Shown here: one piece after another, positions 1 through 35,843 of the stretch | Position numbering within the stretch: position 1 is the stretch's first letter | Layout: each line of letters begins with the position of its first letter | IMG/VR virus record: IMGVR_UViG_3300034104_003795 | Location: 186,001-250,000 of that record | DNA: 64,000 nt | Strand: one strand, 5' to 3' | The notes under the pieces: model-generated | Database searches by the model: none | What the model saw: only the letters and a program-made list of their open reading frames with translations | Told to the model about the DNA's origin: nothing | Program-made: the position numbers and the translations under genes

Positions 1-210
1 TCCTAACGCATCAAATGGTGCCGGTTTAATTGCTTGTGGTATTACCTTTTCAACTTCTTGCGCAATTACTCCAATATCATGTCTATCAATTGGATTAAAC
101 CCTAACGAATCAACCATCTCTTTCCAATCAAAATAAACACCTCTTAATTGCTTCAACATTCCCAATGCATCACTAATTGTAGTAATATTTTCTTTCAATC
201 TTTCATCCGA
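1..210 (-). other. Peptidase S74 / intramolecular chaperone autoprocessing domain (partial)
   Basis: SDERLKENI...LRGVYFDW...IGVIAQEVEKVIPQA matches the characteristic S74 signature of phage tail fibres and tailspikes. Confidence 0.88.
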
Positions 211-20000: not shown

Positions 20001-22278
20001 AATTACTAGGTGTTAATTCATCTAAACTAAATATAATAGTTCCACTATCAGTTCCATTATTCGTAACACCAGTGTTGTATGCACCATCCGTTCCGGTTTG
20101 AATACTTCCAGATTTTATCCAAAACGGATGCCCACTTGCATTTATATTAAAGGTATATGTAACACCTCTTACTAATGTTAATGTTGGATTTGATGCACTT
20201 ATTGCGTTACTAAACACATATGCACTAAATCCATTATTTGTTACATCAAATACGGTGTTTAACGATTGACTTGGAATTGCATAGTTTGAAGATGAAACAA
20301 TCATACTTCCACTAAACTTACTATAAACGTTTACATTAAATCCCTTTACCGGGTCAATAGATGCGGTTGCAGAACCAGAGAAAATTAAATTAACATCTAA
20401 ATTAGAAATAGCTGAACGAGGAATATTAAATAACTTCTCACCACTACCACTAAAGAATGAACCAGATGATAAGAAAACACTACCACTAAAAGTAGAACCA
20501 CTTGCAACTGATTTTACAACGAATCCATCCACATCGGTTACAGATGCAGTTACACTACCACTTGCAATTAAATTTGAAATCAATGCATCGGGTGCTAAAG
20601 CTGTTCTAGGGATGTTAAATAATCTTTCACCACTACCACTAAACGATGAACCAGAAGTTAGTGATATATTACCACTTACAATTAAAGAACCGGTAAATTG
20701 AGAACCACTATCCGGTGATATTACTCTAAATCCTTCATCAGGACTAACAGATGCGGTTACACTACCACTTGCTATACGAAATACTTCTTCAGATAACGCA
20801 GAACGAGGAATATCAAATAACCCTCTACCACTACCACTAAATTGAGATGCCGAAACCGAACCAGTTACTACTAAATAACCCGCTATTGTAGCAGATGTAT
20901 TAACTTCTAATCCCTTATCAGGTGATATTGATGCGGTTGCAGAACCACTTGCAATTCTAGGTGCAACAAGAGATGGTACGTTTGTTAATTTACTACCATC
21001 GCCCACAAAGAAAGATGCGGTTACGGCACCATTGACGTTTACCGAACCACTTATATCAACACTTCCGGTAAATTGTGAACCCCTATCTACAGATTCTACT
21101 CTAAATCCAAAATTAGGTGAAACAGATGCAGTTACACTACCACTTGCAATTCTAAAAGGTGCAAAAGAAAGTGCGGATTCTGGAATATCAAATAGAAATC
21201 TACCAGAACCACTAAAGAATGAACCGGATGCTAATTTTATACTACCAGTAAATTCAGAACCATTTGCTTCCGATTCAACCCTAAATCCAAATACAGGAGA
21301 AACGGATGCCGTTACCGAACCGCTTGCTAATTTTGTAGCTTCGGGTAAATTAAATAGGCCTTTACCATCTCCAGAGAATGAACCAGTAAATGAGCCTGTT
21401 GCAGAAGATGCAGTAAATTGATTTATAGTGGCCGTTAATGAAAATATAGAACCAGATTCTACTATAACGGATCCAGTAGTTAAACGTAAACTACCTGTAA
21501 TTTGCACACCACCTAAAAATGATGCACTTTGTGCGTTTATTATTAAAATATCACCAAGAACCGATGCTGTCACCGAGCCACTTGCTAATATTGCAGATTC
21601 AATTGCAGATTGTACATTTCTTAAATCTCTACCGTCTCCAAAAAATGAGCCCGTAAATGATGAAGATATTGAAGAACCGGTTGCTTCATTAAATCTTAAA
21701 TAATTTCCAATTTCAACCGAACCTGTAAATTCTTGTTTATCACTTAATTCATCACCAAATTTATTTGAACCAGATGAATATATTACAGATGATGAAATTA
21801 TACTAACAACTAATTGTTCAGCATATATTGATTTTGATACATATAAATTTTCTGCAATTGTTGTATCAACATTTATTTGTAATCCAAAATTAGGAGAAAT
21901 TGATGCAGTTGCAGAACCACTAGCTAAACGTATTGTGTCAGGTAAATTAAATAAACCAGCACCATCGCCAAAATAAGAACCAGAGAATGAACCAGTATAA
22001 GAACCCGTAAAACTACCACTTAATGATTCAGCACTACCAGTAAAAGAACCTGTAAATTGTCCCGTTACTCTATCTAAATCTAAACTTCTTACGAATCCTC
22101 TATTACCTTGGTCATCTGAAACTACAATAGCTGGTGAACCAGAAAGTGAAGCACTAAAATTTGGAACACCCAAATTTGGTTCAACTTGAGATAAATCAAT
22201 AAATTGATACCTGTCTTGTGTTACGTTTTTTGGGGATACTACCCTTACCCTACCTGATAATAGATTACTAATTGCCAT
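11089..22278 (-). CDS. Giant virion appendage protein (3729 aa): about 24 SGS-rich repeats, three cupredoxin-like domains, about 1090-aa Gly-X-Y Ser/Thr tract, C-terminal fibre domain
   Basis: ORF track. Repeats xIxSGS(V/A)TAS(V/I)SP..G; three GHP(F/L)W...LYY.CQ.HS.M domains; C-terminal TITWPVNVDWAGGSAPTLT...DILVF typical of phage tail proteins. Confidence 0.85.
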   Translation of the reverse strand: MAISNLLSGRVRVVSPKNVTQDRYQFIDLSQVEPNLGVPNFSASLSGSPAIVVSDDQGNRGFVRSLDLDRVTGQFTGSFTGSAESLSGSFTGSYTGSFSGSYFGDGAGLFNLPDTIRLASGSATASISPNFGLQINVDTTIAENLYVSKSIYAEQLVVSIISSSVIYSSGSNKFGDELSDKQEFTGSVEIGNYLRFNEATGSSISSSFTGSFFGDGRDLRNVQSAIESAILASGSVTASVLGDILIINAQSASFLGGVQITGSLRLTTGSVIVESGSIFSLTATINQFTASSATGSFTGSFSGDGKGLFNLPEATKLASGSVTASVSPVFGFRVESEANGSEFTGSIKLASGSFFSGSGRFLFDIPESALSFAPFRIASGSVTASVSPNFGFRVESVDRGSQFTGSVDISGSVNVNGAVTASFFVGDGSKLTNVPSLVAPRIASGSATASISPDKGLEVNTSATIAGYLVVTGSVSASQFSGSGRGLFDIPRSALSEEVFRIASGSVTASVSPDEGFRVISPDSGSQFTGSLIVSGNISLTSGSSFSGSGERLFNIPRTALAPDALISNLIASGSVTASVTDVDGFVVKSVASGSTFSGSVFLSSGSFFSGSGEKLFNIPRSAISNLDVNLIFSGSATASIDPVKGFNVNVYSKFSGSMIVSSSNYAIPSQSLNTVFDVTNNGFSAYVFSNAISASNPTLTLVRGVTYTFNINASGHPFWIKSGSIQTGTDGAYNTGVTNNGTDSGTIIFSLDELTPSNLYYTCQFHSAMQGAINVVNAIEIPAEITFIGKTNITGSLGVSGSVFLGSGSFFSGSGRGLFDIPQSAFTGDAYRIASGSVTASVSPDYGFRVESLQRGSDITGSVRVSGSLTAERIFSPEFSGSFEGDGSRLRNVPSIEGTRIVSGSVTASVSPVYGFRLEGANRAEFSSSILVSGSVEISSGSSFSGSGERLFNIPRTALAPDALFSEKIVSGSVTASVAPNQGFVVTSIESGSTFYGEVRVITGSSFSGSGKKLFDIPVAALSDLDTSKIFSGSATASISPDKGFLVNTGVTVRDYLIVTGSTDIKSNLVVTGSLKVNQSSLFKSGVSASVFSGSGAGLTDIPFSALSQEIFRIASGSVTASALPDFGFIVESTLLGSQFTGSINISGSVFAHGNIELQSGSSFSGSGRNLFDIPESALSFAPNKIASGSVTASVSPVFGFRVQSADSGSEFTGSVDITGSLLVRGDVTSTSGSYFIGDGRFLNNITLANLAIDSTKIFSGSATASISPNNGFEVNVHSRIDGSFVVSSSARPLPTELIDNTIYVTNDGSSAYVVSNGLISGSNPTLTLVRGVEYTFNVNAVGHPLWIKFINSTGTSNNVSQSITNNGDDSGDIVFTPYSGSPNILYYNCQLHSSMVGQLNIVDFLEIAPEITFIGNTQITGSLNTSGPVSSSMFSGSGKGLFDIPRSALSEEVFRIATGSITASVTPEFGFLVQSVSSGSTFSGSIFMASGSFISSSGRLLFDIPRSALTEDALISAEIKSGSVTASVSPVDGFKVKTPFTSSLVFDNVFNVINNGSGEYVFSGAASGSNPTITLHRNYEYIFNINASGHPFWINETSGTGDTNFYNSWVTNNGEDVGQITFLVSGSAPNTLYYNCQFHSSMAGVINIVDGNPNLIFDTQIGSRFTGSVDISGSLYINEIASGGLFLSSGSSYYGEGTYLRNIPRSALTEDALISTEIKSGSVTASVSPVDGFRVITPFTGGLVGSQFTGSVEVSGSIRATEFLFGDGRFITNVVAAAAPLIASGSATASVQSGNVFIITTAATGSQIGSQFTGSIEVSGSIRATDFLFGDGRFITNVVATAAPLIASGSATASVQSGNNFIVRTAATGSDIGSQFTGSVSISGSLTADDLTARGFVFGDGRFLTNVQAAAAPLIASGSATASVASGDKFIVNASSGSQFTGSVSITGSLTASLFIGDGGGLFNIPPDAIENLELAKINSGSGVAIIDPTKLDVNVPITAARYDGDGSGLFNIPAEALEDLQLDRIISGSVEAVISPNKGLEINTSVRIFSGSLAVSGGIFVTGSDVVLQSGSRYVGDGSGLRNINIANLAFETAILKSGSVFAEISPDLGFRVSTSASIDGDLDVVYDITAHNISASGTIFAPTISGSFLGTYNFQGVGPTASAEYDILRYDEDRGYFVPQPETSLTETVSFSNVSDLTIVHNLGILYPMVQVYATGSEDQIIPGTVKSIDEDTIQIKFAGLTSGHVVIGSGGSLINGTIPGDRVFGEVLSASYARRAEVAVSVQGFDSASLASLSASLGDSSQYVRNNQTSSMAVFSAVSSSYALTASFALNGGGGGTELFIYHTSSLVKSQTAKINFSGSGVDVISSGSDGVLVTINGGAAQTSLTASYILSTGVDGPLGMDSISYSVNALTASFALNSANTDTSSFLNINTNQTINASLTISGSLGVSGSIMLGGIVSASYDEVVTWDPITKKLGYRNVAAAVGSSGTGGSSGSSGSSGLTGTSGTSGSSGSSGSSGSSGSSGIDGSSGSSGSSGSSGSSGTTGTSGSSGSSGSSGSSGSSGSSGTSGSSGSSGTSGSSGTSGTSGTSGSDGSSGSSGTSGSSGSSGTSGSSGTSGTSGSSGSSGTSGSSGTSGSSGSGGSSGSSGSTGSAGTSGTSGTSGSSGSSGSSGTSGSSGTSGSSGTSGTSGSSGTSASSGSGGTAGTSGSSGTSGTSGTSGTSGSSGSGGTSGSSGTSASSGTGGTAGSSGTSGTSGSSGSAGSAGTSGSSGTSGSSGSDGSGGSSGTTGTSGSSGTTGSAGSSGTSGSSGTSGEDGSSGTSGSSGSSGSAGTSGTNGSAGTSGSSGSSGSSGSSGSAGSSGSSGSSGSSGTTGSDGTSGSSGSSGTSGTDGTSGSSGSSGSSGSSGTTGSSGSSGSSGSSGSSGADGTSGTSGSTGTAGSSGSSGTDGSFGTSGSSGSSGTSATSGSSGSSGSSGSSGSSGSSGTSGSSGLDGTYFGSSGTSGSSGSSGTSATSGTSGSSGTSGVDGTFFGSSGSSGSTGTSGTDGTSGETGTSGTSGESGTSGTSGLDGTFFGSSGTTGTSGSSGSSGSSGISGTDGTSGTSGKDGTFFGSSGTSGQDGTSGTSGSSGSSGSSGQDGTSGTSGLDGTFFGSHGTSGTSGESGSAGSSGSSGTSGESGTSGTGGSSGSSGTSAEGSSGSSGTSGESGTSGTSGSDGTSGSSGTSGESGTSGKDGTFFGSSGTSGSSGTSGSSGSTGSSGSAGTGGTSGVSGTSGSSGKDGTYFGSSGTSGSSGESGTSGSSGISGTDGSAGSSGSSGTSGKDGTFFGSSGTSGESGTAGTSGQSGTSGTSGSSGTSGSSGFDGTYFGSSGTSGISGTSGTSGESGTSGVSGTTGTSGSSGKDGTLFGSSGTSGVSGTSGVSGSSGTSGLGTNGTSGTSGFDGTYFGSSGTSGKDGTNATGEAGTSGTSGTTPPGFTSGTSGETGTSGTSGTTPPGFTSGTSGSSGESGTAGTSGTTPPGFTSGTSGTSGISGTAGTSGTTPPGFTSGTSGQSGTSGTSAPGFTSGTSGTSGFPLSGNTEDGILTYNAVAFGANVESNLTFNGSTLTVTGNVISTTSIAANTFRETYSDQGTGGSVTLDLSTGNNFRRQFNGNASVAFSNAPASNAFGFTLVTVNAGAYTITWPVNVDWAGGSAPTLTSVGTDILVFYTYDGGTTYYGFVSGKNFS
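11550..14815 (-). repeat. Coding (G-S-S/G-T-S)n tract of about 1090 codons with DGT(F/Y)FG and TTPPGF punctuation
   Basis: Direct reading of the 3729-aa translation and the 9-bp periodic DNA. Confidence 0.93.
15900..21960 (-). repeat. About 24 copies of a 60-70-aa repeat (F.G.G.GL.DIP.SAL....IASGSVTASVSP..GF.V.S...GS.FTGS)
   Basis: Counted by eye on the SGS(V/A)TAS core in the translation; some copies are near-identical at DNA level (e.g. 16700-16740 vs 16890-16930). Confidence 0.85.
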
Positions 22279-22346: not shown

Positions 22347-23264
22347 TTATTCATTAGCAGATTCAAGTAGAGATAGAACTACTGATAGCTTAGTTGAGCC
22401 GGAAACTATAAATCCATAACCTTCTTCTAATACTAATTTACCAGAAACTACCGGTGAAAGTGAATCTGCTACTGGTATTGTCACATTTGTTACCAATTCA
22501 ACAGGTGGTTGTTCGGTAAATACTGGATTTTCAATGGTTGCTTTAATAACGTCCACTAAACTATTAACCAAATATATAGATGCCGAAATTCCCGCTTCAG
22601 TTCCATTTGTAAATCCACTTAATATAGATTGAGTAACTGCATTTTGAAATAATAATGGAGAATCAGCCGAACCGGTTGTTGATTGGTTTTTTATAATTTG
22701 ATTAGATAATACTTTTAAATAATCTAAAGCAAATATAGATGCAGAATATTCAGTTGTTGCAATCGCAGATACTCCATTTTTATCAAAATATGCTTTTGCT
22801 GCTTTATTTGTTCTGATTGTTGTGTTATTAACTATATCATATTTTATCGCATCTACATCATCTAAAGTATTTTGTTCAAAGTATGATGATATAAAAGTAA
22901 ATGGTGTTTCTGATAAACTATTTTGATTAGAAGTATATGCCGCTATTTCCTTTCTTAAAAATTGTCTATTAGCATTTAATAACAAAGATGCACTGGCAAA
23001 ACTACCACTATATTCTGATAATGAAACAGAAGCACTAATAAACGCACTACCACTATATATGTCAACAAATTGTGGAACAGGCAATTCTCTATTAGATGTT
23101 ACTAATATAGTAACGGGTTGTGTTACTAAACTATTGTTTGTAATTTGACAAGATAGTACAATAGATGATACCCCAAGAGGAGTTGCATATATTTCATCTT
23201 GTTCTCCGGTCAATCCCGATACTACTGACTGAAACCGATTTAAGGGTACAAAAACTTCTGCCAT
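22347..23264 (-). CDS. Virion structural protein (305 aa): small beta-rich domain split by one helical (globin-like) repeat
   Basis: The N- and C-terminal parts align by eye with the 110-aa protein at 9063..9395. The middle (NANRQFLRKEIAAY...DAIKYDI...LDYLKVLSNQII) resembles the repeats of the 4184-aa protein. Confidence 0.72.
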   Translation of the reverse strand: MAEVFVPLNRFQSVVSGLTGEQDEIYATPLGVSSIVLSCQITNNSLVTQPVTILVTSNRELPVPQFVDIYSGSAFISASVSLSEYSGSFASASLLLNANRQFLRKEIAAYTSNQNSLSETPFTFISSYFEQNTLDDVDAIKYDIVNNTTIRTNKAAKAYFDKNGVSAIATTEYSASIFALDYLKVLSNQIIKNQSTTGSADSPLLFQNAVTQSILSGFTNGTEAGISASIYLVNSLVDVIKATIENPVFTEQPPVELVTNVTIPVADSLSPVVSGKLVLEEGYGFIVSGSTKLSVVLSLLESANE

Positions 23265-23288: not shown

Positions 23289-26200
23289 TTATATTTGTAG
23301 TGCCAATGAGAACGGAGTTACTAATGAGAATAGAGATTTACTAAATGTTCTACCCACAAGAGTACCAGTTGCTTGATTAATACTTAGGCCAGTACCAATT
23401 CTAAAGTCACCATCTTGGTTACCGGAAGTGAAGAATATTCTACCACCACCCAATTCGGTAATTTCAAACGCCGGATTTGCCACACCACTACCACCCTGAT
23501 TTGGAGGAAGTGCTTTAAACGTCACACCACTACCATTATAAGAGTAGTCAATACCAGTTGCCACAATCAATGAACCAAATGCTTCTAATGGTGCACCCGC
23601 TGCTATAAACTCTGCTCTTGTTCTTAAATATCTATTAGTTTCAAGAGTTTCTAATAACTGGTCTCTAGTCACTGCAATTGCACTTCCATATTGACCATCG
23701 TAGTATGAAGATGCTGCTCTAATTCCTCTCTCATTTCCACCATATAATAAGTCAGTAACACACGCATCTACAATAAATCCAGTATCACGTGAACAACTAG
23801 CCTCATTATATACTAAATATGGAAATGCTCCATTTGTATATCCAATTGCTCGTTGTTTTAATTCTTCCTTACCAAGTTTTAATCTTTCTGCCGCCTGTCT
23901 TCTTTTAGTTGATGGTGCTAAATAACTTAATAAAGTATTTGCAACTATCTTTTCAGAAAGTCCTCTTGCGAAGTTAATACCATCTACCGTTTGTTTCTTT
24001 TGTCCATTATTATCACCATAACTATCCACTATTGCTACTGATGGGAATTTATAATAGTAAGAACCCGCTTCAATACTTCTTTCATTACCACCATACACTA
24101 AGTCAGTTCTAATTGCATCTATAATAAACCCTAAATCTCTAGAACAACTTACTTCGTTATATTTCAAATTACTCCAAGAAGAACTTAAGAATGTTATAGT
24201 TTCCTTTTGTATCAATTCTTTATTATCTGTCAACAATTTAGCGGTTGTTAGTAAAGATGCCGAAGGTACTAAATATGTTGGATTGGTTATTACCTTTTTA
24301 GATACCTTTCCAGCGTATCTGATACCAGTAAGCGTTGGGTCTAATTGGTTTTTAGTTGATGGAACACCTGCGTTAATAGCGTTAGAAGGATATAAGTAAT
24401 AATACTGTCCTGCTATCAAACTTCTTTCTTGTCCACCATAAAGTACATCAGTTGCCGCTGCATCTATTAGGTATCCAACATCTCTCTTACAAGTAGTTTC
24501 ATTGTAATATACACTACTCCAAGATGAAGATACATATTTAATTGTTTCTTCTGCTACAAATGCTTTATTCTTTCTTAATAGGTCAAATGATGCAGATGCC
24601 TCTAATGATGCAGTTACAAATACTATGTTTTGCGCAACTTTTTGTGCCAATCTACTTGCGTAGTTTATACCATCAACTGTTTGTCCTAATTGACCAAGTC
24701 CATCACCATCTCCTTCAACAATTGCTAAAGATGGATATAGATAATAGAACTCTCCATTCAATACAGTTCTCTCATTACCACCATATAATAAATCGGTAGT
24801 AACACCATCTAATATATAGCCAACATCTCTCTTACATTTATCTTTATCATACTCAAATGTACTCCAGCTAGCAGTTAAGTAAGCTAGGGTTTCATTTTGT
24901 ATAAACTCTCTGTTATTTCTTAACAAATTAACCGATGCTGATATTATTTGTGATGCAGTTACATAAGTTAATGATGTAGCTACATTTTTAGAAGTTTGTC
25001 CTGCGTAATTAACACCAGTTAATGTTGGTTGTAATTGTGAACCTTGTGCTTGAGATGGATATAAGTAATAGAACACCCCAGCATTTGTACTTCTTTCATT
25101 ACCACCATATAATAAATCGGTAGAAACTGCATCTATGATATGTCCAACATCTCTCTTACAAGTTACCTCATCATAAGATGCTGTGCTCCAAGAAGAAGAT
25201 ATGTACGCGATAGTTTCGTTTTGAATAAACTCTCTATTGTTTCGTATCAATTCGTATGATGCTGATACATTTGCCGATGCGGTTACATAAGTTACATTTT
25301 GTACTATATTTTGTGCCAAACGGCTAGCATAGTTAATACCATCCAATGTTTGGTTTAGTTGTGCACCTTGTGCTTGAGATGGATATAAGTAATAGAACAC
25401 TCCATTGAATATTGATGCGGAATTTGCATTAAATAATAAGTCTTCGGCAGAACCACTCAATATAAACCCTAAATCACGTCTACATTTACTCTCGTCATAA
25501 GATGCGGTTGACCAAGATGAACTCAAATATGCAATACTTTCCGATACTATGAATCCAATATTTGCTTTTAATAAATTATATGCGTATATTACATTAGTAT
25601 CAACGGATGCAGTTGTATATGGAATTAAAGTTGGTAATGAACCAGTACCATTTCTTACTATATCTGTTACAATAGAAATAGATGCCGATATTGCATTAGC
25701 TTCGGTAATAGTTCCAAATAACGATGATGTTATAAATTGTTGAGCGTTGGTTACTTTAATATTTGCTAACGTATTAGGTATAACAGAAGGTGTCCCTATC
25801 AATATACTACTAATAGATGCCGTTGTTATTCTAGCTGCGTACTTAATTGCCTCTACCGTTTCTACAACTTGCGAACCAGACCCATTAGCTTGAGATGGGA
25901 ATTCATAATAGTAATCTGCATTCTTTCTACTTCTTTCATTTCCACCATAAAGTAAATCAGTTGCCACACCATCGATAATATATCCTAAATCTCTATAACA
26001 TTTACTTTCACTATAATCTAAATTAGGGTATTTAACATTTACAAATGCGATACTTTCACTTTGTATGAATCGTTTGTTAGCCTTTATTAAATCATAAGTA
26101 TATTGAACTTCTAATGATGATGTAAATATCTCTTTATTAACAACTACATTCATAGCTGTTCCTTTTGCGTATCTTACACCAGTTAATGTTGGTTCTAATT

Positions 26201-29200
26201 GTGAATCGGTAGCTTGTGATGGGAAATCATAATAATATCTTCCAGCTACAACACTTCTTTCGTTTCCGCCATATAAAAGGTCAGTTGCTACTGCATCTAT
26301 AATGTATCCAATATCTCTTTTACAAGTTATTTCATTATAATCAAAATCACCCCAAGAAGAAGATAGATACGCAATTGATTCACTTTGTATAAATCCTTTG
26401 TTAGCTCTTAATGAATTCCAAGATGCTGATGTTGGTTGGTTAATTGATGCCGATATGTGTGTAAACGGAATGTTCAACACCACCTTCTCTGCCAATCCAC
26501 TTGCGTATTTAATTGCAGTGATTGTTTGGTCTAATTGTGAACCAGTTGCTTGTGATGGGAAATCAAAATAGAACTTACCATTAAACAATGATGCCGAATT
26601 ACCACCATATAAAAGGTCAAATGCAGAACCACTAAGGATTCCAGTCAAATCTCTTTCACATTTACTTTGTGTATATTCAAACCCACTCCAAGATGAACTC
26701 ATATACGCAATAGTTTCATCAACTATAAATTTAGAGTTACTTACTAATAAGTTATATGCTGAATTTATCTTTGCATTTGTATTTGCTATCGGGAATGTTG
26801 ATGGTCTATATGCAATTGAGCTCGTACCATTATTTAATAACACATCGATTACTAATGATAATGATGCTGATATCAATTTACCTTGCAATCTTCCTGCCGC
26901 ACTTCCACTTATTAATTGTGGAGTATCAGTTACTTTAATACTTGCAGATGTATTTGATACAATTGTTGGCAGAACTGATGTTCCATTTTCAATTACATTT
27001 AGTATCAAATCAAATCCACTTGCAATCTTATTAGTATCAAACGATGATGCGGATATGTCTTGTCTTATAGGATTTGCATTTGTTACTTTTAATGATGAAG
27101 ATGTACTTGCTACTAATGTAGGTAATACACTTACTCCATTTTTAAGAACGTCTACAACAGTACCATAAGAAGAACTTACATTTGTAATTTGAATTGCCAA
27201 ATCATATGAACCAGTTCCAATTATTTGTTCTTGTGAACTTATATGTAATAAAGTTGGTGTAGATAATTCAAATCCATAATTATAGTTTCTTGCCAATGAA
27301 TCCGGTACAAATGCAACACCATTTTCAATAATATCAGCCACATGCTTAAATGATGATGTGATAATATCCAATTCAGCTCCACTTGCCGATATTGATGATG
27401 AGTATTGAGTAGTATTAGTTATTTTGATTAAACCATTGCCATTTTCAACGATAGTTGGTATTGTAGATAATCCATTTTCAATAATATTAGTAACTAACGC
27501 AAATGATGAACTAATTTGATTTACTTCGTTTATACTTGCACTCAACGGTGTTGTATATTGTGTTGTATCAGTTACTTTAATATTTCCATCGGTATTTGTT
27601 GTTAATGCCGGTGAATTTAATTTAATATTTTGTGCTATTGCTTTAGCTAATACTTTAGCGTATTCAACACCTTCCACAGTTTCTCTAACTTGCGTACTCT
27701 TTGTTGCTAAAGATGGATATAAATAATAATATTGTCCAGCTATAACACTTCTTTGATTTCCACCGTAGAAAGTATCAGTTATAACTGCATCTAAAATATA
27801 TCCTACATCACGTCTACATTTTTCTCTTAAATAAACTAAATTAGGGAAGAATGCATCTATGTATTGTACAGTTTCGTTTTGTATAAATCTTTTGTTCTGT
27901 CTTAATAAATTAACCGATGATGTTACAAATCCAGTTGGTGCTATCAATACTTTATTTGATATTACATTTTGTGCAGTACCAGCTACATATTGTATTCCAT
28001 CAAGTGTAGGTCCTTTTTGAGTTTCGGTAGTTGGTGAAATAGAACCAGTCAGAATTGCTGCAGATGGGTATAGATAATAGTACTCACCTGCTTTAGAACT
28101 TCTTTCGTTTCCACCATATAAAAGGTCAGTTCTTACTGCATCTATAATATATCCAATATCTCTCTTACAAGTAGTTTCGTTATAAGAGAATCCATCATCA
28201 CCACTCCAAGACGAAGATAAGTAAGCGATTGATTCACTTTGTATAAACTTCTTATTATCCGTTAATAAATTAAATCCAGTTAATTCAGATGTTGTTGGAG
28301 ATTGTAATAATATATTTGCTACAATCTTTTCAGTAATTCCTTTAGCGTATTTAATACCATCTAAAGTTTGATTCAATTGTCCACCGGTATCACCATCGTT
28401 ACCTACGGTTGCCAATGAAGGATATAAGTAATAATACTCTCCTGCCTCAGCCACTCTTTCGTTTCCACCGTAAAGAATATCAGTTGCTACTGCGTCTAAT
28501 ATATAACCAATATCTCTCTTACAAGTAGTTTGGTTATAAGGGAATGTACTCCAAGAAGAAGATAGATATGCAATAGTTTCATCTTGTATAAATGATTTAT
28601 TATTGAATATCAATTCGTATGCTGAAAGATTTGAATTAGATGCTGATGCAAATGTTGAATTCTTTAATATCTTATCAGTTAAACCTTTCGCATGTTTGAT
28701 TCCACTTAATGTTGCCCCTAATTGAGATGTTGTTGCTTGTGATGGATATTCATAATAGAATACACCGGCATTTATACTTCTCTGATTACCGCCATAAACT
28801 ATATCGGTTGTTACCGCGTCTAAAATATGGCCCACATCTCTCTTACAAGTTAATTCATTGTAAGATGTTGTACTCCAACTAGCAGATACATAACTTATAA
28901 CTTCGTTTTGTATAAATTCTCTATTATTATAAATTAATTCTTTTGCTTGTAATTTATTTTGAGATACTTTAGTAAATGTATTTCCTCTTAAAATTTTGAA
29001 TGCAATATCTCTAGCATATTCAATACCAGTAACAGTCTCTTGTATTTGTGAACCAGTTGCTTCAGATGGGTATTTATAATAGAATACTCCAGCATTTATT
29101 GTTCTTTCATTTCCACCATATAATAAGTCAGTAGAAACTGCATCTATAATATGTACTATATCTCTTTTACAAGTTGATTCAACGTATTGATGTGTACTCC

Positions 29201-32200
29201 AAGATGAACTTATGTAAGGTATTACTTCATTCTTAATAAGTTCTTTATTATTAACTAATAAACTATACGCATCTTTAATTTGCGCCGATTGAGTTACAAA
29301 TAAAGTATTTAATACTATTTTTTGTGCTAAACGGCTTGCGTAGTTGATACCATCCAATGTTTGGTTTAATTGTGCACCCTGCGCTTGAGATGGGAATTGA
29401 TAATAATAAACACCATTGAATACCGATGCTGAATTTGCATTAAATAATAAGTCTTCAGCTGAACCACTCAATATAAATCCTAAGTCACGTTTACATTTAC
29501 TTTCATCGTAAGATGCAGTTGACCAAGAAGAACTTAAATATGCAATACTTTCCGATACTATGAAATCTAAATTATTTTTTAGAATAGTATAAGCCGCTAT
29601 TACATTTGAAGATGATATTGATGATGTATATAAAGTTACAATCGGTAATGAACCCGTTCCATTTGCTATTATATTTGTTACAATAGAAATTGATGCAGAT
29701 ATTGCATTAGCTTGCGTTTGTGTTGCCGGTGTTCCTCCTAAATATTGAGTAGCATCGGTTACTTTAATATTATTTACATTTGAAGTAATAGTAGGTAATG
29801 AACCAGTACCATTTTCTAATATGTTTATAATTGTATCAAAACTTGCAGATATATTTCTTGCCAACGAAGATGATATAATTACCGAAGATGTATATTGATT
29901 TGTATCTGTTATTTTTACTAACCCGTCAACATTTTTTATCAACGTAGGTAAAGAACCAGTTCCATTTTCAACAATATCCAAAACAATATTAAAATTATTA
30001 TTTGAAGATGTAAGATATGTGGATGATATTGATGCGGTTGTTATGTAACTATTTGTAGTAGTTCGTTTAATTAAAGAATTTACATTTGTTACAATAGTTG
30101 GAATTGAACCTGTGCCATTTTCTACAATATCAAGTACGATATCAAATCCAGTAGTTACTTTTGCCTTTTCAGAATTAGAAGGAGTTATTGATGATGTTAT
30201 TTGTGTACCACCAATAAAGTTTATACCTCTATTTGTATTTTTAACAATAGTTGTTGGTATTGAACCAGTTCCGTTTGATACGATATTAAGTATATTACCA
30301 AATGAAGCTGATACAATAGATTTATCGTTTGTTACTACTGATATAGATGATGTAATTTGTTGAGCGTTAGTTGCTTTAATTCCAGCAATAGTATTTAACA
30401 CCACATTAGGTGCTGTATTACTTCCACTTTCAATTACTTTAGATACAATATCAAAACCATCTTCTATTTCTTTTCCACCAATTGCTACTAATTTTGCTAA
30501 ACCTTTTGTGAAGTTTAGTGAATCAATTGTTTCTTCGGATTGAACACCGGTAGCTTGAGATGGATATAAATAATAGAATCGTCCAGCAGTTATACTTCTT
30601 TCATTACCACCATAAACCAAATCAGTAATTACAGCATCTACAATAAATCCAGCATCTCTATAACATTTACTTTCAATATAATCTAAATTAGGATATGTTT
30701 CGTTTGCGTAATCAACGGTATTTTGTTGTAAAAATGCTCTATTAGTTTTTAATAAACTTGCCGCATTTAATACTGATGTAGGTGGTGCCGATAAAACAAC
30801 ATTCGTAATTATATTTTGTACTAATTGATTTGCGTAATTTACTCCAGTTATAGTTGTGTCTAATTGTTGTGTTGCCGAAGGTACTCCACCTACAATTGCT
30901 GCTGATGGGTATCTATAATAGTATTCTCCTGCAAATCTAGTTCTTTCGTTACCACCATATACCAAGTCAGTTCTTACAGCATCTAAAATATATTTAGTAT
31001 CTCTTAAACATTTAGCCTGATTATATTCTGCGGTACTCCAAGATGAAGATACATAAGCTACAACTTCGTTTGCAATTAAGTTTTTATTTCTTAATATTAA
31101 ATTACTTGCATTTACTTTATTTCCATCCGCTGAAACAAATACCGAACCAGTAACAATCTTTTGTATCATTCTACCTGCATAGTTGATACCATCTAACGTT
31201 GGAAGTAATTGAGAACCCGTTGCTTCGGATGGATATAAATAATAGAATATACCAGCATTTCTACTTCTTTCGTTACCACCATAAACCAAGTCAGTTCTGA
31301 TTGCATCTATTATGTACCCAACATCTCTTTTACAAGTTAATTCATTATACGGATGTTCACTCCAAGATGAACTCAAATACGCAATTGTTTCATCCTGTAT
31401 GAATGTTTTATTGTTTACTAACAATGATGCCGCATTTAAAGAGTTAGCACTTACCGTAGTGAATTCTATATTTTGAATTACTTTTTGTGCTAAACGGCTT
31501 GCGTAGTTGATACCATCCAATGTTTGTTGTAGTTGAGCTCCTTGTGCTTGCGATGGATATTCCCAATAAAATAATCCGTTAAATATAGATGCTGAATTTG
31601 CGTTCCATATTAAATCTTCCGCAGAACCACTCAATATAAATCCTAAATCACGTTTACATTTAGTTTCATCATATTCAAACCCAGCCCAAGAAGAACTTAA
31701 ATATGCAATAGTTTCATTTTGAATAAATGGAATATTGTTTTTAAGTATCTCATATACAGCTACACTATTAGATGATGTTATTCTATTTGTATATGGTTGG
31801 AATGTAGGTGCTGAAAACTCTCCACCTTCAATTATCTTTGTTACTATTGATATTGATGCTGATATAAAGTTTACATCGTTTACACTTGCCGAATAAGATG
31901 CTGAAATGTATTGTGGTGTATTTGTTACTTTAATACTTGCACTTACATTTGATATAAGAGTAGGTACAAAAGATAACCCACCTTCTAATATATCGGTGAT
32001 TACTTTTATTGAAGAACTTAATTGTGTACTTTCAGTAGATGTTCCATAATAACCAGAACCAGTTATGTATTGTGGTGTATTGGTTACTTTTATATTTGAG
32101 TTTAGATTTGAAACTAATGTACCTAATGAACCAGTACCATTTGTTATTATAGTTGCTACATATGCAATTGATTCGGATATTGAATTTCCAACAGAACCAC

Positions 32201-35200
32201 TAACTGCCAATGAAGCAGTTATTTGTGGTGTACCAGTTACGGCAATTGCATTTGCTTGAGACGATGTGAATAAAGGCTCTGCTGCTAATCCACCACCAAT
32301 AATCGTATTTACAATATCAAAACTCTTACCAATTTTATCCACTTCATCTGGTGTTGTATAAGATGAAGTTATTTGAGAACCGGTAGTTACATTTATTGGA
32401 TTGTATTTATTCCAATTTAATCCAGTATTCTGTGCCAATAATGATTTAATTGAACCCAATCCTCTTGCCACAATTCCTTCTATAATTGAAAATGAATTAC
32501 CAACCGAAGTTTGTTCAATAGTACCACCACCAAAAGATGATGTTATATTTGTTAGTCCGGATAATCTAAAGTTTCTCTCATCATTATAAACAATACGAGG
32601 TGTATCTAATATTTGATTTTGAACAATAGTATCTCCAATAATTTTTGCATATCGAATACCCGCAATAGTTGATGATTTTTGTGTTCTCGTAGCCTGTGAT
32701 GGGAAATCGTAATAATATCTACCCGCAATCACACCTCTTTCAAGACCACCATAAAGTAAATCAGTTGCCACATTATCAACAATATAACCAACATCTCTCC
32801 TACAAGTTGCTTGATTATATTTTAAATTTGGAAATGCAACATTAATAAATTGAATTGTTTCGTTTTGAATTAATTCTTTATTATTTATCAGATTATTATA
32901 TGCAGATAAAGTTGATGCATTAGGTGATGTAAATGTTTTTCCTTTTAATAGATTATCAACTAATCCACTAGCATATCTTATACCATCCACCGTTTGTCCT
33001 AATTGCCCAACACCATCTCCATCTCCTTGTACAATTGCCAATGAAGGATATAAATAATAGTATTCACCGGCAGTTATACCTCTTTCATTACCACCATATT
33101 TTACATCAGTTGCTACCGCATCTAATATATAACCAGTATCACGTCTACACTTTACTTCGTTGTAATAAAAATTAGACCAAGATGATGATAGATAAGTTAT
33201 AACTTCATTTTGTATAAATGTTCTATTATCCCTGATTGTATCCCAAACATCCACTACTTCATTGTTTGGTTCTACATATACCCTACCTCTAATCAAATTT
33301 AATGCAACACCCGCTGCGTGCTTAACTGCAGTTAATGTTGGTCCTAATTGTGTTGTAGTTGCTTCGGATGGAAATTGATAATAGAATAAACCATTTCTAA
33401 TACTTTCTTCATTACCCCCAAAAAGTAGGTCTTTTGCTACACCATCAATAATATATCCAACATCTCTTTTACAAGTTTCTTCTGGATAGTAAAATTCACT
33501 CCAAGAAGAAGATACAAATTGAATAACTTCATCTTTAATAAATTCTTTATTATTTACTAATATTTCGTATGCAGTTATGATATCAATAGCAGTTTTAGCT
33601 ATTGAACCACTTTGTATTGTGGCTGGATATGTTAATGTATTTCTAATTAATTCAAATGGGGTTGTAGATGAATTTACTATGTTAATTTCACCACCCATAG
33701 AACTTCTATTCTGTGATACATAATATAATTTATTTGGTGCATTATATGGTACTGTAAAGGTTATTGTACCTCTACTATCACCATTATTAACCATGCCAAT
33801 ATTATAATCAAATTTCTCACTAATACCTTCTATTTGTTGTGTTCTAATCCAAAATGGATATTCAATTCCACCAAATGTTTCTATTGCATCTACATTGAAT
33901 TTGTAGGTTTCTCCTCTAAATAAAGTTAATGTAGGATTACTACCAATTCCTTCAAAATCAAATGAAGAACTATTTGTATTTGTTATTACAAATGATTTTT
34001 GGTGATTCTCTGGTATTGGTAAAATATTACTACCAGTACCATTTGCTAAAATGTTATAAACAATACTGAAACTGGCACTTACCGAATTTATTGTTGCTAA
34101 TGATGATGTCACACCAAGCATTACTTGTTCGGTATTACCAGCTTTAATACTAGCACTTGTATTTGAGATAAACGTTGGTTTAGCAGAAAGGCCTGATTTA
34201 ATAATATTAATTATATTGTTAAACGATGCACTTACCGATGAAGTATAGTTTGTTGCTACACTCCCTATTGGTTGTATAACATCATTACCTATTTGTCTAC
34301 TTGCACTTGTGTTTGGTCTAAAATTAAACGAACCCGTACCATTTGCCAATATACTCAAAATAGCGGCATAAGATGCACTTATTTGAACTAAATCCGCATT
34401 TGATGCCGATATAGATGATGTTATTTGCTCTGCTCCTAAAATATTATAAGGAGAATCAAATCCATATCCTTTTATAGAACTCTTTGCCAATAAAGTTGGA
34501 AAGTTTGATACCCCACTATCAACAATTGCACTTATTAATTTATAATCAGCCGATATTTCTTCCGCCGCAGCAGTTGATAATGAAGTTCCAGCAGATACTC
34601 TACTTTGTGTATATAATGCCGGAGAAGTTAAACGAATACCTTCATCGGTATTTAATTTTGTTATTGTAGGTAATCCGTTTTCCAATCCTTTATTTAATAC
34701 ATCTACAACACAACTCCAAGTTCCTCTAACAGAATCTCTAGCAGCAATATTACCACCACTACCAGAAATAAAACGAGAACCGGATGCATACATACCATAC
34801 AAACCAAACGAAATGTTTGAGTTGTTTAGGGTAGCATGTCCACCATTATTTACTCTAATAGAATAATATGAGAAGTTATTAAAGAAAGATACCAACTGAA
34901 TGAAACCTCTACCATTTACCAAACATCCTACACCATTTGGAGAAATCTGCGTATAAGCATCCAATACCATTGAAGCTAGTGGAGAATCTGGATCAATTAC
35001 ATCACCATTAACATAAAGACCTCCGCCGCCTGGTGGAATATCCTCATAAAGTTCGGTGAATGAATTTTCTTGGTTTGAAATTTGTGAACAGTTCTGAACA
35101 TATGGAGAAGTTGTAATAAATGCTCCAGGTTGAAACGCCACCGCAAATCCTTTTTCAGGATTTATTTGGTCTGGAAATAATCTCAAACCACCCATCGTTA

Positions 35201-35843
35201 CCTCTGCAATATAACATCCAGAGTTTACATAGAAAAGGTCTTCTGTGGGGTTTTTCGCGTTAATCTTGGTGATACGCAAACCGGCACCCCAAATGGTTGT
35301 GTTTTTAGGAAGAATCACAGGATTATCCTCTAAATACGTTCCAGCCTGTACCTTGATTACATATCCATTGAATATTGAACCAGTATCAAATCCATATCTA
35401 CCATCATACCCCGGAGATGCCAATGAAGCCGCTCTTTTAATTGTACGAAGTGGATATTGAATACTTCTACCATCGTTTGTATCATCACCATCGGTAGAAG
35501 ATACATAAAGAGTTGGAACGTTAGCACCAAAATCTTTTGCAAGAATACCAGCATATCGTTGAGTATCAACTGCCAATAAAGTGTTCGATGCGGTAACCGC
35601 AAGAACAGTTTCAGGTGCCGCAACTTTTAATTGTCCATCAATTGTTAATGAGCCAGTTAAAAAAACCGAACCAGTTATTTCACTTTTAGAACCCGTTTCT
35701 GTTCCTAAAAAGAAACTTTTAGATACGAATAATGAGCCAGATATAATGGCATCGTTTCCAACATTAACGTTTTGTCTAATGTTAAGTGAACTACTTATAT
35801 CCTGTTGTTCTTCAATTTGTTTACGTGGTATCAGTCTTGCCAT
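23289..35843 (-). CDS. Giant virion structural protein (4184 aa): pectin-lyase-like beta-helix split by 22 CxRD globin-like repeats and 22 amphipathic-helix repeats
   Basis: ORF track. N-terminal LYVSSTDGDDTNDG...IKRAA...IKVQAGTYLEDNP...GAGLR...SPYVQNCS; C-terminal GGRIFFTSGNQDGDFRIGTGLSINQATGTLVGRTFSKSLF as in T4-like aquatic phage structural proteins. Confidence 0.85.
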   Translation of the reverse strand: MARLIPRKQIEEQQDISSSLNIRQNVNVGNDAIISGSLFVSKSFFLGTETGSKSEITGSVFLTGSLTIDGQLKVAAPETVLAVTASNTLLAVDTQRYAGILAKDFGANVPTLYVSSTDGDDTNDGRSIQYPLRTIKRAASLASPGYDGRYGFDTGSIFNGYVIKVQAGTYLEDNPVILPKNTTIWGAGLRITKINAKNPTEDLFYVNSGCYIAEVTMGGLRLFPDQINPEKGFAVAFQPGAFITTSPYVQNCSQISNQENSFTELYEDIPPGGGGLYVNGDVIDPDSPLASMVLDAYTQISPNGVGCLVNGRGFIQLVSFFNNFSYYSIRVNNGGHATLNNSNISFGLYGMYASGSRFISGSGGNIAARDSVRGTWSCVVDVLNKGLENGLPTITKLNTDEGIRLTSPALYTQSRVSAGTSLSTAAAEEISADYKLISAIVDSGVSNFPTLLAKSSIKGYGFDSPYNILGAEQITSSISASNADLVQISASYAAILSILANGTGSFNFRPNTSASRQIGNDVIQPIGSVATNYTSSVSASFNNIINIIKSGLSAKPTFISNTSASIKAGNTEQVMLGVTSSLATINSVSASFSIVYNILANGTGSNILPIPENHQKSFVITNTNSSSFDFEGIGSNPTLTLFRGETYKFNVDAIETFGGIEYPFWIRTQQIEGISEKFDYNIGMVNNGDSRGTITFTVPYNAPNKLYYVSQNRSSMGGEINIVNSSTTPFELIRNTLTYPATIQSGSIAKTAIDIITAYEILVNNKEFIKDEVIQFVSSSWSEFYYPEETCKRDVGYIIDGVAKDLLFGGNEESIRNGLFYYQFPSEATTTQLGPTLTAVKHAAGVALNLIRGRVYVEPNNEVVDVWDTIRDNRTFIQNEVITYLSSSWSNFYYNEVKCRRDTGYILDAVATDVKYGGNERGITAGEYYYLYPSLAIVQGDGDGVGQLGQTVDGIRYASGLVDNLLKGKTFTSPNASTLSAYNNLINNKELIQNETIQFINVAFPNLKYNQATCRRDVGYIVDNVATDLLYGGLERGVIAGRYYYDFPSQATRTQKSSTIAGIRYAKIIGDTIVQNQILDTPRIVYNDERNFRLSGLTNITSSFGGGTIEQTSVGNSFSIIEGIVARGLGSIKSLLAQNTGLNWNKYNPINVTTGSQITSSYTTPDEVDKIGKSFDIVNTIIGGGLAAEPLFTSSQANAIAVTGTPQITASLAVSGSVGNSISESIAYVATIITNGTGSLGTLVSNLNSNIKVTNTPQYITGSGYYGTSTESTQLSSSIKVITDILEGGLSFVPTLISNVSASIKVTNTPQYISASYSASVNDVNFISASISIVTKIIEGGEFSAPTFQPYTNRITSSNSVAVYEILKNNIPFIQNETIAYLSSSWAGFEYDETKCKRDLGFILSGSAEDLIWNANSASIFNGLFYWEYPSQAQGAQLQQTLDGINYASRLAQKVIQNIEFTTVSANSLNAASLLVNNKTFIQDETIAYLSSSWSEHPYNELTCKRDVGYIIDAIRTDLVYGGNERSRNAGIFYYLYPSEATGSQLLPTLDGINYAGRMIQKIVTGSVFVSADGNKVNASNLILRNKNLIANEVVAYVSSSWSTAEYNQAKCLRDTKYILDAVRTDLVYGGNERTRFAGEYYYRYPSAAIVGGVPSATQQLDTTITGVNYANQLVQNIITNVVLSAPPTSVLNAASLLKTNRAFLQQNTVDYANETYPNLDYIESKCYRDAGFIVDAVITDLVYGGNERSITAGRFYYLYPSQATGVQSEETIDSLNFTKGLAKLVAIGGKEIEDGFDIVSKVIESGSNTAPNVVLNTIAGIKATNAQQITSSISVVTNDKSIVSASFGNILNIVSNGTGSIPTTIVKNTNRGINFIGGTQITSSITPSNSEKAKVTTGFDIVLDIVENGTGSIPTIVTNVNSLIKRTTTNSYITTASISSTYLTSSNNNFNIVLDIVENGTGSLPTLIKNVDGLVKITDTNQYTSSVIISSSLARNISASFDTIINILENGTGSLPTITSNVNNIKVTDATQYLGGTPATQTQANAISASISIVTNIIANGTGSLPIVTLYTSSISSSNVIAAYTILKNNLDFIVSESIAYLSSSWSTASYDESKCKRDLGFILSGSAEDLLFNANSASVFNGVYYYQFPSQAQGAQLNQTLDGINYASRLAQKIVLNTLFVTQSAQIKDAYSLLVNNKELIKNEVIPYISSSWSTHQYVESTCKRDIVHIIDAVSTDLLYGGNERTINAGVFYYKYPSEATGSQIQETVTGIEYARDIAFKILRGNTFTKVSQNKLQAKELIYNNREFIQNEVISYVSASWSTTSYNELTCKRDVGHILDAVTTDIVYGGNQRSINAGVFYYEYPSQATTSQLGATLSGIKHAKGLTDKILKNSTFASASNSNLSAYELIFNNKSFIQDETIAYLSSSWSTFPYNQTTCKRDIGYILDAVATDILYGGNERVAEAGEYYYLYPSLATVGNDGDTGGQLNQTLDGIKYAKGITEKIVANILLQSPTTSELTGFNLLTDNKKFIQSESIAYLSSSWSGDDGFSYNETTCKRDIGYIIDAVRTDLLYGGNERSSKAGEYYYLYPSAAILTGSISPTTETQKGPTLDGIQYVAGTAQNVISNKVLIAPTGFVTSSVNLLRQNKRFIQNETVQYIDAFFPNLVYLREKCRRDVGYILDAVITDTFYGGNQRSVIAGQYYYLYPSLATKSTQVRETVEGVEYAKVLAKAIAQNIKLNSPALTTNTDGNIKVTDTTQYTTPLSASINEVNQISSSFALVTNIIENGLSTIPTIVENGNGLIKITNTTQYSSSISASGAELDIITSSFKHVADIIENGVAFVPDSLARNYNYGFELSTPTLLHISSQEQIIGTGSYDLAIQITNVSSSYGTVVDVLKNGVSVLPTLVASTSSSLKVTNANPIRQDISASSFDTNKIASGFDLILNVIENGTSVLPTIVSNTSASIKVTDTPQLISGSAAGRLQGKLISASLSLVIDVLLNNGTSSIAYRPSTFPIANTNAKINSAYNLLVSNSKFIVDETIAYMSSSWSGFEYTQSKCERDLTGILSGSAFDLLYGGNSASLFNGKFYFDFPSQATGSQLDQTITAIKYASGLAEKVVLNIPFTHISASINQPTSASWNSLRANKGFIQSESIAYLSSSWGDFDYNEITCKRDIGYIIDAVATDLLYGGNERSVVAGRYYYDFPSQATDSQLEPTLTGVRYAKGTAMNVVVNKEIFTSSLEVQYTYDLIKANKRFIQSESIAFVNVKYPNLDYSESKCYRDLGYIIDGVATDLLYGGNERSRKNADYYYEFPSQANGSGSQVVETVEAIKYAARITTASISSILIGTPSVIPNTLANIKVTNAQQFITSSLFGTITEANAISASISIVTDIVRNGTGSLPTLIPYTTASVDTNVIYAYNLLKANIGFIVSESIAYLSSSWSTASYDESKCRRDLGFILSGSAEDLLFNANSASIFNGVFYYLYPSQAQGAQLNQTLDGINYASRLAQNIVQNVTYVTASANVSASYELIRNNREFIQNETIAYISSSWSTASYDEVTCKRDVGHIIDAVSTDLLYGGNERSTNAGVFYYLYPSQAQGSQLQPTLTGVNYAGQTSKNVATSLTYVTASQIISASVNLLRNNREFIQNETLAYLTASWSTFEYDKDKCKRDVGYILDGVTTDLLYGGNERTVLNGEFYYLYPSLAIVEGDGDGLGQLGQTVDGINYASRLAQKVAQNIVFVTASLEASASFDLLRKNKAFVAEETIKYVSSSWSSVYYNETTCKRDVGYLIDAAATDVLYGGQERSLIAGQYYYLYPSNAINAGVPSTKNQLDPTLTGIRYAGKVSKKVITNPTYLVPSASLLTTAKLLTDNKELIQKETITFLSSSWSNLKYNEVSCSRDLGFIIDAIRTDLVYGGNERSIEAGSYYYKFPSVAIVDSYGDNNGQKKQTVDGINFARGLSEKIVANTLLSYLAPSTKRRQAAERLKLGKEELKQRAIGYTNGAFPYLVYNEASCSRDTGFIVDACVTDLLYGGNERGIRAASSYYDGQYGSAIAVTRDQLLETLETNRYLRTRAEFIAAGAPLEAFGSLIVATGIDYSYNGSGVTFKALPPNQGGSGVANPAFEITELGGGRIFFTSGNQDGDFRIGTGLSINQATGTLVGRTFSKSLFSLVTPFSLALQI
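23600..33590 (-). repeat. 22 copies (5 blocks: 3,4,6,3,6) of a 90-100-aa helical repeat N(K/R).FI..E...Y....W...Y....C.RD.GYI.DAV..DL.YGGN.RS..AG.YYY.YPS.A....Q...T..GI.YA
   Basis: Counted on the CxRD motif in the translation. Confidence 0.9.

Follow-up and report, generated by a model that had tools for sequence, protein, structure and literature searches.

In SMC and Rad50 proteins a single chain runs out and back as a single coiled-coil hairpin, with the termini meeting in one domain, and in spectrin each unit is a complete three-helix bundle, with pairing between chains. Here we analyse a 64,000-nucleotide stretch of viral DNA (positions 186001-250000 of IMG/VR record IMGVR_UViG_3300034104_003795; hereafter the window) that encodes P0001, a fibre protein of 4184 amino acids carrying two repeat families, which we call A (a CxRD repeat of ~108 amino acids) and B (a strand-plus-helix repeat of ~51 amino acids). 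As we propose to read it, P0001 would share with SMC/Rad50, its nearest functional analogy, the antiparallel pairing of distant segments and the meeting of N- and C-terminal parts, while differing in being built of 22 globular modules, each in two pieces, with five nested hairpin arms and a rule of balanced counts; no sequence or fold relationship connects the two. With spectrin it would share an elongated chain of helical units of ~106-108 amino acids and a length set by antiparallel repeat pairing, and it differs in having a second repeat family and a bracket grammar. Nothing in the literature searched describes a stack rule that pairs two families of repeats in balanced numbers, and we know of no protein whose structure has been put as a bracket grammar; the nested-repeat architecture proposed here is new.

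Among described phage proteins, the C-terminal 785 residues of P0001 (five A units and the C-terminal region) are matched by tblastn at 22-35% identity in T4-like cyanophages, in giant proteins annotated as 'tail fiber', 'short tail fiber' or VrlC-like (S-RSM4 gp214, B23 gp322 and S-CAM1). CxRD cores are common to P0001, B23 gp322 and S-RSM4 gp214, and the N- and C-terminal domains of gp322 from Synechococcus phage B23 appear similar to those of P0001 by eye. The cyanophage relatives differ in carrying far fewer units and in having no B unit detectable by hidden Markov model (HMM). In the papers searched, none of these nearest relatives is portrayed in such terms.

All evidence presented here is computational. 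On the strength of it we consider it likely that B and A units of P0001 pair one to one, at long range and in nested order, as halves of one module. The central 3700 residues would then consist of two repeat families that complete each other: each B unit would join one A unit of its own chain, its helix lying on helices α2 and α4 and its strand bridging the C-terminal strand of A. The chain would run outward through a block of B units, turn, and come back through A units, each of which takes the latest B unit still unpaired, a stack rule of last out, first back that would return the N- and C-terminal regions to one place. Because such a path must close, B and A units would be gained or lost only together. 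Both the overall shape and the confinement of pairing to one chain are what we infer from the results that follow.

By sequence, P0001 is a predicted virion fibre protein, matching the PHROG tail-fibre and virion-structural families (PHROGs 4527, 5342 and 701) with E-values of 1.7e-189 and 5.9e-174, and it presumably serves as a host-recognition fibre. A megablast search with its gene gave no match in our phage collection, which possibly lacks close records. Each A unit consists of four helices and a terminal β-strand, and each B unit of an IKVT-like strand, a loop, an amphipathic helix and the motif NGxGSxPT, in that order.

An HMM built on the C.RD sites recovers 22 A units (E 1e-33 to 1e-50) in blocks of 3, 4, 6, 3 and 6, in agreement with the 22 cores that the first-pass annotation had reported between positions 23600 and 34730 (residues 372-4082 of P0001). 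The pattern C.RD occurs exactly 22 times in the protein, and its Cys, Arg and Asp never vary among the 22 units and hardly vary in homologues. The last A units of blocks 1-5 carry FPNL, YPNL, FPNL, YPNL and FPYL in place of SSSW, and the first A unit of each of blocks 2-5 is an RDL..ILSGSA.DL variant, both as described before. For B, an iterated HMM yields 20 clear units in blocks of 4, 5, 5, 5 and 1, and two further units are degenerate and retain only the helix (residues ~356-397 and 1792-1812, E 0.28). The unit at ~356-397 is homologous to units with E<1e-3 in homologues, and block 3 holds six B units at that threshold in some homologues against five in P0001. With these two weak units counted, the earlier tally of 22 'ISASF' repeats in blocks of 5, 5, 6, 5 and 1 stands. 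The literal word ISAS[FILY] occurs only eight times, so the repeat is a profile with no fixed word; literal motif counting, in which loose regular expressions gave 27 matches, was abandoned in favour of HMMs. Read from the N-terminus, the gene is laid out as follows.

23289..35843, minus strand: the P0001 gene, encoding the 4184-amino-acid fibre protein (open reading frame and PHROG match).
34779..35843, minus strand: N-terminal domain, residues 1-355, probably a right-handed β-helix (Atlas features).
34014..34778, minus strand: B block 1, from B1 (degenerate, helix only) to B5; B3 with an 11-amino-acid LAK.. junction insert.
33564..34013, minus strand: β-rich domain of ~150 amino acids, residues 611-760, between B5 and A1, at the predicted tip of arm 1.
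32592..33563, minus strand: A block 1, A1-A3; predicted partners B5, B4 and B3.
31749..32591, minus strand: B block 2, B6-B10 and a hairpin loop; B7 with a LAQ.. junction insert.
30471..31748, minus strand: A block 2, A4-A7; predicted partners B10-B7.
29586..30470, minus strand: B block 3, from B11 (partial, helix only) to B16, and a loop.
27600..29585, minus strand: A block 3, A8-A13; predicted partners B16-B11.
26751..27599, minus strand: B block 4, B17-B21 and a loop; B19 with a 13-amino-acid ..LAR.. junction insert (AlphaFold models).
25782..26750, minus strand: A block 4, A14-A16; predicted partners B21-B19.
25575..25781, minus strand: B block 5, B22 and a loop.
23550..25574, minus strand: A block 5, A17-A22; predicted partners B22, B18, B17, B6, B2 and B1.
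23292..23549, minus strand: the C-terminal 86 residues, conserved also in the T4-like cyanophage relatives.

The Atlas features of the N-terminal domain resemble DUF1565 clusters at 0.92 and Pfam gave no match for it; it is a candidate right-handed β-helix of the DUF1565 or pectin-lyase-like kind. The ~150-amino-acid domain between B5 and A1 likewise has no Pfam match, and by eye it has a cupredoxin-like look; in homologues the same insert, or one resembling it, is found at other places between B units.

We treated each B unit as an opening bracket and each A unit as a closing one and paired them as a stack. This assigns A1-3 to B5-3, A4-7 to B10-7, A8-13 to B16-11 and A14-16 to B21-19; in the last A block, A17 takes B22, A18-19 take B18-17, A20 takes B6 and A21-22 take B2-1. 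The block order B5 A3 B5 A4 B6 A6 B5 A3 B1 A6 thus resolves into a trunk and five arms. The trunk would consist of B1-2/A22-21, B6/A20 and B17-18/A19-18, and the hairpin arms would hold 3, 4, 6, 3 and 1 modules, with the block-starting A variants at the hairpin tips. Long-range nested pairing had been proposed in the first-pass annotation, together with a single self-complementing hairpin rod; the bracket pattern replaces the rod with the branched form, and the pairing itself gains support from the counts and from each of the analyses below.

The branch points of this scheme would be marked on both sides, by the block-ending A variants and by B units that carry a 9-13-amino-acid insert or lack their strand. 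In P0001 an insert of this length with the motif LA[KQR] precedes only B3, B7 and B19, and the strand half is missing only in B1 and B11. These five atypical B units are the exact stack partners of the five block-ending A units, a pattern noticed after the fact for which the random expectation, with five positions among 22, is ~1 in 26,000.

The register can also be read from sequence divergence within the one protein. In a mirror-tree comparison, identity between pairs of A units correlates with identity between their nested B partners at r = 0.45 (P = 5e-5; null 0.00 ± 0.12 from 20,000 permutations), and when the two partial B units are removed the correlation is 0.36 (P = 4e-4). Alternative registers give lower values: 0.14 for parallel pairing within stems, -0.05 for sequential pairing, 0.13 for a global reverse and -0.07 to 0.29 for shifts of one or two units.

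AlphaFold2 models of segments that join helix blocks to core blocks show the expected B:A pairs. A first model covering residues 2746-3534 (B17-B21, A14-A16, B22 and A17), computed from a 50-row alignment, reached a mean predicted local distance difference test (pLDDT) score of 84.8 and a predicted template-modelling (pTM) score of 0.72. In it B19-B21 and B22 score 83-95, and B17 and B18, whose partners are absent from the segment, score 57-70 over most of their length. The β-bridges assigned by DSSP are confined to the IKVT strands of B20, B21 and B22 and the terminal strands of A14, A15 and A17, which make up the three predicted pairs in which the units have strands. We predicted beforehand that B17 and B18 would become ordered once A18 and A19 were supplied. 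In a second model, extended to residues 2746-3754, their pLDDT rises to 83-94 and new bridges appear at the B17 and B18 strands and the terminal strands of A18 and A19 (mean pLDDT 86.5, pTM 0.74). The possibility raised earlier that the ISASF helices pack only with each other is thus not what the models show.

The longest-range pairs were modelled as a complex of residues 1-454 (N-terminal domain, B1 and B2) with residues 3868-4184 (A21, A22 and the C-terminus). The interaction prediction score from aligned errors (ipSAE) was 0.73 (0.69, 0.73 and 0.77 in separate runs), against 0.00 for the best of three controls, with a partner pLDDT of at least 62 and at least 74% contact agreement between runs. 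Calibration of this tool had put 58 of 80 solved complexes at or above the mark, against 2 of 110 mismatched pairs; these counts apply only roughly here, since the alignments were our own. The contacts of lowest error link the B1 helix (residues 368-384) with residues 157-165 and 200-214 of the second chain, which are α2 and α4 of A22, and the interface includes residues 395-448 (B2) and residues 1-108 of the second chain (A21). Residues 144-369 of the N-terminal part contact residues 4081-4097, just after A22. The earlier suggestion that the repeats are inserted into a split β-helix domain is partly supported, by this confident docking of the segment after A22 onto the β-helix-like domain.

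The same B:A interfaces could instead form between chains, in a domain-swapped dimer or trimer whose B blocks cover the A blocks of another chain. Phage fibres are usually oligomers, swapping is compatible with predictions made on monomers, and an antiparallel dimer would likewise need equal counts. We nevertheless regard this arrangement as unlikely. A global antiparallel register misaligns the block boundaries (5, 5, 6, 5 and 1 for B against 6, 3, 6, 4 and 3 for reversed A), and its mirror-tree correlation is only 0.125 compared with 0.45 for the nested pairs. Moreover, the junction rule is specific to stack pairing, and the models place neighbouring B and A units in hairpins with short conserved loops at high confidence.

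Equal numbers of A and B units in one protein could be a coincidence. A word search returned 120 homologues of 3240-5154 amino acids, 108 of them full length, and we counted their units under fixed rules (a lenient HMM, with gaps of 47-80 amino acids between B units scored as missed units). Under these rules A equals B in 102 of the 108, with A counts ranging from 16 to 28, and the remaining six are each short by one undetected degenerate B. Repeat numbers therefore stay equal as lengths vary, the behaviour on which the first-pass annotation had staked its proposal, and since the two counts track each other across homologues the equality in P0001 is no coincidence. Lenient calling alone gives exactly equal counts in 68 homologues. 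The 102 balanced proteins fall into 23 architectures, in none of which do the brackets closed exceed the brackets opened at any point in unit order. A first gap-based rescue of B units was tried and rejected, as it over-counted a conserved insert of 40-46 amino acids that is not B-like; the threshold was then set at 47 amino acids or more.

The junction rule holds across the same 102 balanced homologues, where an atypical B unit stands at 475 of 503 predicted positions and at only 34 of the 1758 other B units. Fourteen of these 34 exceptions are one relic insert in a B5 A8 architecture (P0070, P0074 and others), in which the third B unit of the last B block retains its junction insert and the corresponding block-ending A unit is gone; it looks like the recent loss of one A and one B.

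Block pairs (B,A) also change in step among homologues, as in (1,6), (2,7) and (3,8), in (5,5), (6,6) and (7,7), or in (5,4) and (4,3). Such steps place one more unit on either side of a B-to-A junction, which no single contiguous duplication can do, and they point to selection for balance and not to a by-product of duplication. They bear on a second alternative, that B and A units are independent, unpaired beads whose equal numbers follow from the duplication and deletion of segments. Whole B+A block pairs are indeed gained and lost in large insertions and deletions, for example an extra (6,4)(4,6) or the loss of (6,6), and one contiguous deletion accounts for the change from B5 A3 B1 A6 to B5 A8. 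Against this stand the (1,6) to (2,7) to (3,8) series, the predicted contacts and the covariation described below. In addition, the block pairs of P0001 are individually unbalanced (+2, +1, 0, +2 and -5) yet total zero, and a zero total is found in every architecture. Independent beads are in our judgement very unlikely.

Pooling all balanced homologues gave 1658 distinct B-A pairs (effective number 508), in which we measured covariation as mutual information with average-product correction. The ten best column pairs average 0.176 in the nested register, 0.065-0.095 when the register is shifted by one or two units and 0.004 when partners within each protein are drawn at random. The best covarying columns are 31, 35 and 38 of the B helix with 77, 81, 84 and 88 of A, which form one face of α4, and columns 6-7 of the B strand covary with columns 94-103 of A, the terminal strand. 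These surfaces coincide with the contacts of the complex model and with the DSSP bridges. That the B:A packing is a modelling artefact, with B units really forming a β/α array of their own, seems to us highly improbable: predictors do tend to bury amphipathic helices and the alignments had only 50 rows, but the complex controls scored 0.00, the gain of order was foretold and specific to B17 and B18, and these model-free sequence tests yield the same register and contact faces.

Unit counts, junction rule, covariation and predicted contacts are all shown in silico, and several points weigh against the within-chain nested reading that we draw from them. Whether the counts come out exactly equal turns on the treatment of weak units: under a strict HMM the excess of A over B is 0 to 3, and two of the 22 B units in P0001 are degenerate. 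The homologues are kin, so that the balance and junction counts are not independent events, and joint duplication of neighbouring units can inflate both the covariation and the mirror-tree correlation, for which the off-register controls allow only partly. Assignment of B to A in the AlphaFold models draws on pLDDT, DSSP bridges and one interface list, and monomer predictions cannot separate pairing within a chain from the same interfaces between the chains of an oligomer. Finally, the last 87 residues are not placed in the complex model.

If nested pairing within the chain is right, the tertiary structure of a 4184-residue protein can be written as a bracket, or stack, grammar, much like an RNA secondary structure. 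It would explain how giant fibres change length, one B and one A being gained or lost together, and would account for the block-end and block-start variants and for the sites at which foreign binding domains are inserted. It would also supply a simple sequence-only rule for the architecture of hundreds of unannotated giant phage proteins. Homologues do carry extra domains of ~155-170, 340-360 and 420-440 amino acids; these separate B units, occupy a hairpin tip or, in one case, follow an A block, positions that fit side- or tip-mounted binding domains. Some of these inserts are annotated as F5/8 type C (PF00754) in precomputed annotations. The 40-46-amino-acid segment that is not B-like, EETIGT..GIPK.SYGD, belongs to a divergent clade (P0043, P0113, P0116, P0119 and others) and adjoins an insert of ~165 amino acids between B units.

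We also asked what fold the A unit represents. CxRD is the usual chromophore-binding motif of phycobiliproteins and of some bilin biosynthesis-associated globins (BBAGs) (PMC10151467). All weak sequence matches of the A unit are of phycobiliprotein type and no curated family cut-off is reached: 19.7 bits against a cut-off of 22.2 for Pfam PF00502 (Phycobilisome; E 9e-4), and 17.5 bits against 269 for NCBIfam TIGR01338 (C-phycocyanin alpha; E 3e-3). A profile search of the PDB found R-phycocyanin at E 0.57, aligned on KCxRDxGY, and a more diverse A-unit profile found no match among PDB sequences. In a comparison by hhalign with 145 cyanobacterial phycobiliproteins, from loci gathered with a short degenerate pattern, the A profile aligned with P = 1.1e-4 and a probability of 56%. 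Columns 28-93 correspond to phycobiliprotein residues 79-153 (helices E, F and G), and CxRD falls on Cys82/84-x-Arg-Asp of the chromophore-binding helix, the helix E equivalent. The alignment ends at helix G, and for helix H hhalign shows no equivalent in the A unit.

Structural comparison points the same way. VIA-align searches against all representative chains returned eight matches at Z of at least 8, seven of them phycobiliproteins or phycobilisome chains (Z 8.2-9.7, root-mean-square deviation (rmsd) 2.3-4.0 Å over 97-112 residues), on a scale where values below ~13 are not decisive for helical proteins. Photocobilin ranks first (Z 9.7), and the top group of allophycocyanin, phycoerythrin, the ApcE bilin domain and photocobilin spans Z 9.1-9.7 and rmsd 2.3-3.4 Å over 97-112 residues. 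Single A units (A15 and A17) align over 97-105 residues at an rmsd of 2.6 Å. A Foldseek search of the PDB with the 789-residue model gave no match at E 1e-3 or better, and the Atlas features of two A units gave no usable match.

The A unit is best read as a truncated phycobiliprotein-type globin that borrows one helix from a far-off segment of the chain. It resembles phycobiliproteins and BBAGs in its globin-like core and in the placement of CxRD on the chromophore helix (PMC10151467), and the phage genome also encodes a haem oxygenase and a bilin reductase. It differs in size (~108 residues against 160-170), in having four helices without X, Y and H, with a fifth supplied by a B unit up to ~3600 residues away, in its 22 copies within one predicted virion protein and in a sequence similarity that stays under the family cut-offs. 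Lying on α2 and α4, the B helix fits as a candidate stand-in for helix H, and also for helix B or the X/Y helices. The first-pass annotation had taken the separate helices to complete globin folds that lack their terminal helix; the globin-like nature of the core is supported by the structural matches at Z 9.1-9.7 and the hhalign placement of CxRD, and for the replaced helix the terminal one is one candidate among several.

Elsewhere in the same genome, outside the window, lie a ferredoxin-dependent bilin reductase (PF05996, E 6e-22; G000:C1:95819-96340(-)) and an adjoining haem oxygenase (PF01126, E 2.5e-15; 96537-96926(-)). The reductase is closest to that of Pelagibacter phage Mosig, at 34% identity. 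Of four related virus records with the giant gene, three also have the reductase, among them both that are rated 100% complete; the fourth has a completeness of only 64%. The phage genome, when searched, yielded no phycobiliprotein above cut-off, no CpeT-type lyase and no psbA. Some BBAGs bind bilins without a lyase (PMC10151467). The function of bilin cassettes in phages of non-cyanobacterial hosts has been left open, with bilin-binding globins named as one possibility (PMC11480375).

The 22 invariant CxRD sites of a predicted virion protein are in keeping with the idea of bilin binding, as a feature of sequence and not as evidence of binding. Doubtful as it still seems to us, the 22 A:B modules may be working bilin-binding globins with a phage-made bilin on each CxRD cysteine, giving a pigmented fibre with 22 chromophores per chain. 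Such a fibre could serve light sensing, photoprotection, energy transfer or simply stability. Marine phages without photosynthesis genes carry bilin genes whose purpose has been left open (PMC11480375), and the fibre would be the first target known for them; it would also add a viral branch to the phycobiliprotein/BBAG family. With CxRD domains, a haem oxygenase and a bilin reductase in a genome without psbA, the purpose of phage bilins becomes a testable question.

A related balance may exist in Synechococcus phage B23. Its gp322 (1497 amino acids, 'tail fiber protein', L001:10684-15177) contains five α1-like helices, five cores and five B-like helices, counted only by eye and with a regular expression, in the order (α1)3 (core, B-helix)3 (α1)2 (core, B-helix)2. 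This suggests the same principle of balance with a different split point, α1 being distant and the B-like helix adjacent. In Synechococcus phage S-RSM4 the gene for a 4482-amino-acid 'short tail fiber' protein (L002:8515-21963) carries repeated CxRD cores, and a CpeT-like bilin lyase gene (L002:7037-7561) lies ~1 kb upstream of it.

Next to the P0001 gene lies a smaller one with a single A unit.

22347..23264, minus strand: P0002, 305 amino acids, one degenerate A unit between β-rich ends (HMM).

The unit spans residues 95-198 (E 4.6e-7) and lacks the cysteine. One core followed by one ISAS-like helix had been noted here before; the core is upheld in this degenerate form, and the helix is seen only by eye. 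P0002 resembles a one-module miniature of the giant protein, and a 288-amino-acid gene occupies the equivalent position on the contig of a divergent homologue.

The virus record is 273,997 bp long with a CheckV completeness rating of 100%, and its genome is that of an uncultured 274-kb marine phage, a myovirus with a distant relationship to T4. Around the giant open reading frame every gene is on the minus strand. The structural module around it comprises a large terminase, a portal, a gp23-type major head protein, a head-tail adaptor, three collagen-repeat fibre genes and the 4184-amino-acid open reading frame itself (23289..35843). The major head protein is ~52% identical to its counterparts in Flavobacterium phage immuto and Microcystis phage Mel-JY01. 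Gene order is conserved on the contig of the divergent homologue, where genes of 151, 353, 125 and 159 amino acids, the giant gene and the 288-amino-acid gene follow one another; the 353-amino-acid product has a faint match to T4 gp15.

The window's other giant genes, at 11089-22278 (-), 1-9045 (-) and 39495-43655 (-), encode fibre proteins of 3729, >3014 and 1386 amino acids, in none of which were A or B units found. Collagen triple-helix repeats are present in all three (E 1.6e-99, 5e-48 and 4e-19, respectively). The protein of >3014 amino acids terminates in an endosialidase-chaperone domain (PF13884), and within the gene for the 3729-amino-acid protein, at 12-14 kb of the window, the GC content climbs to 0.48.

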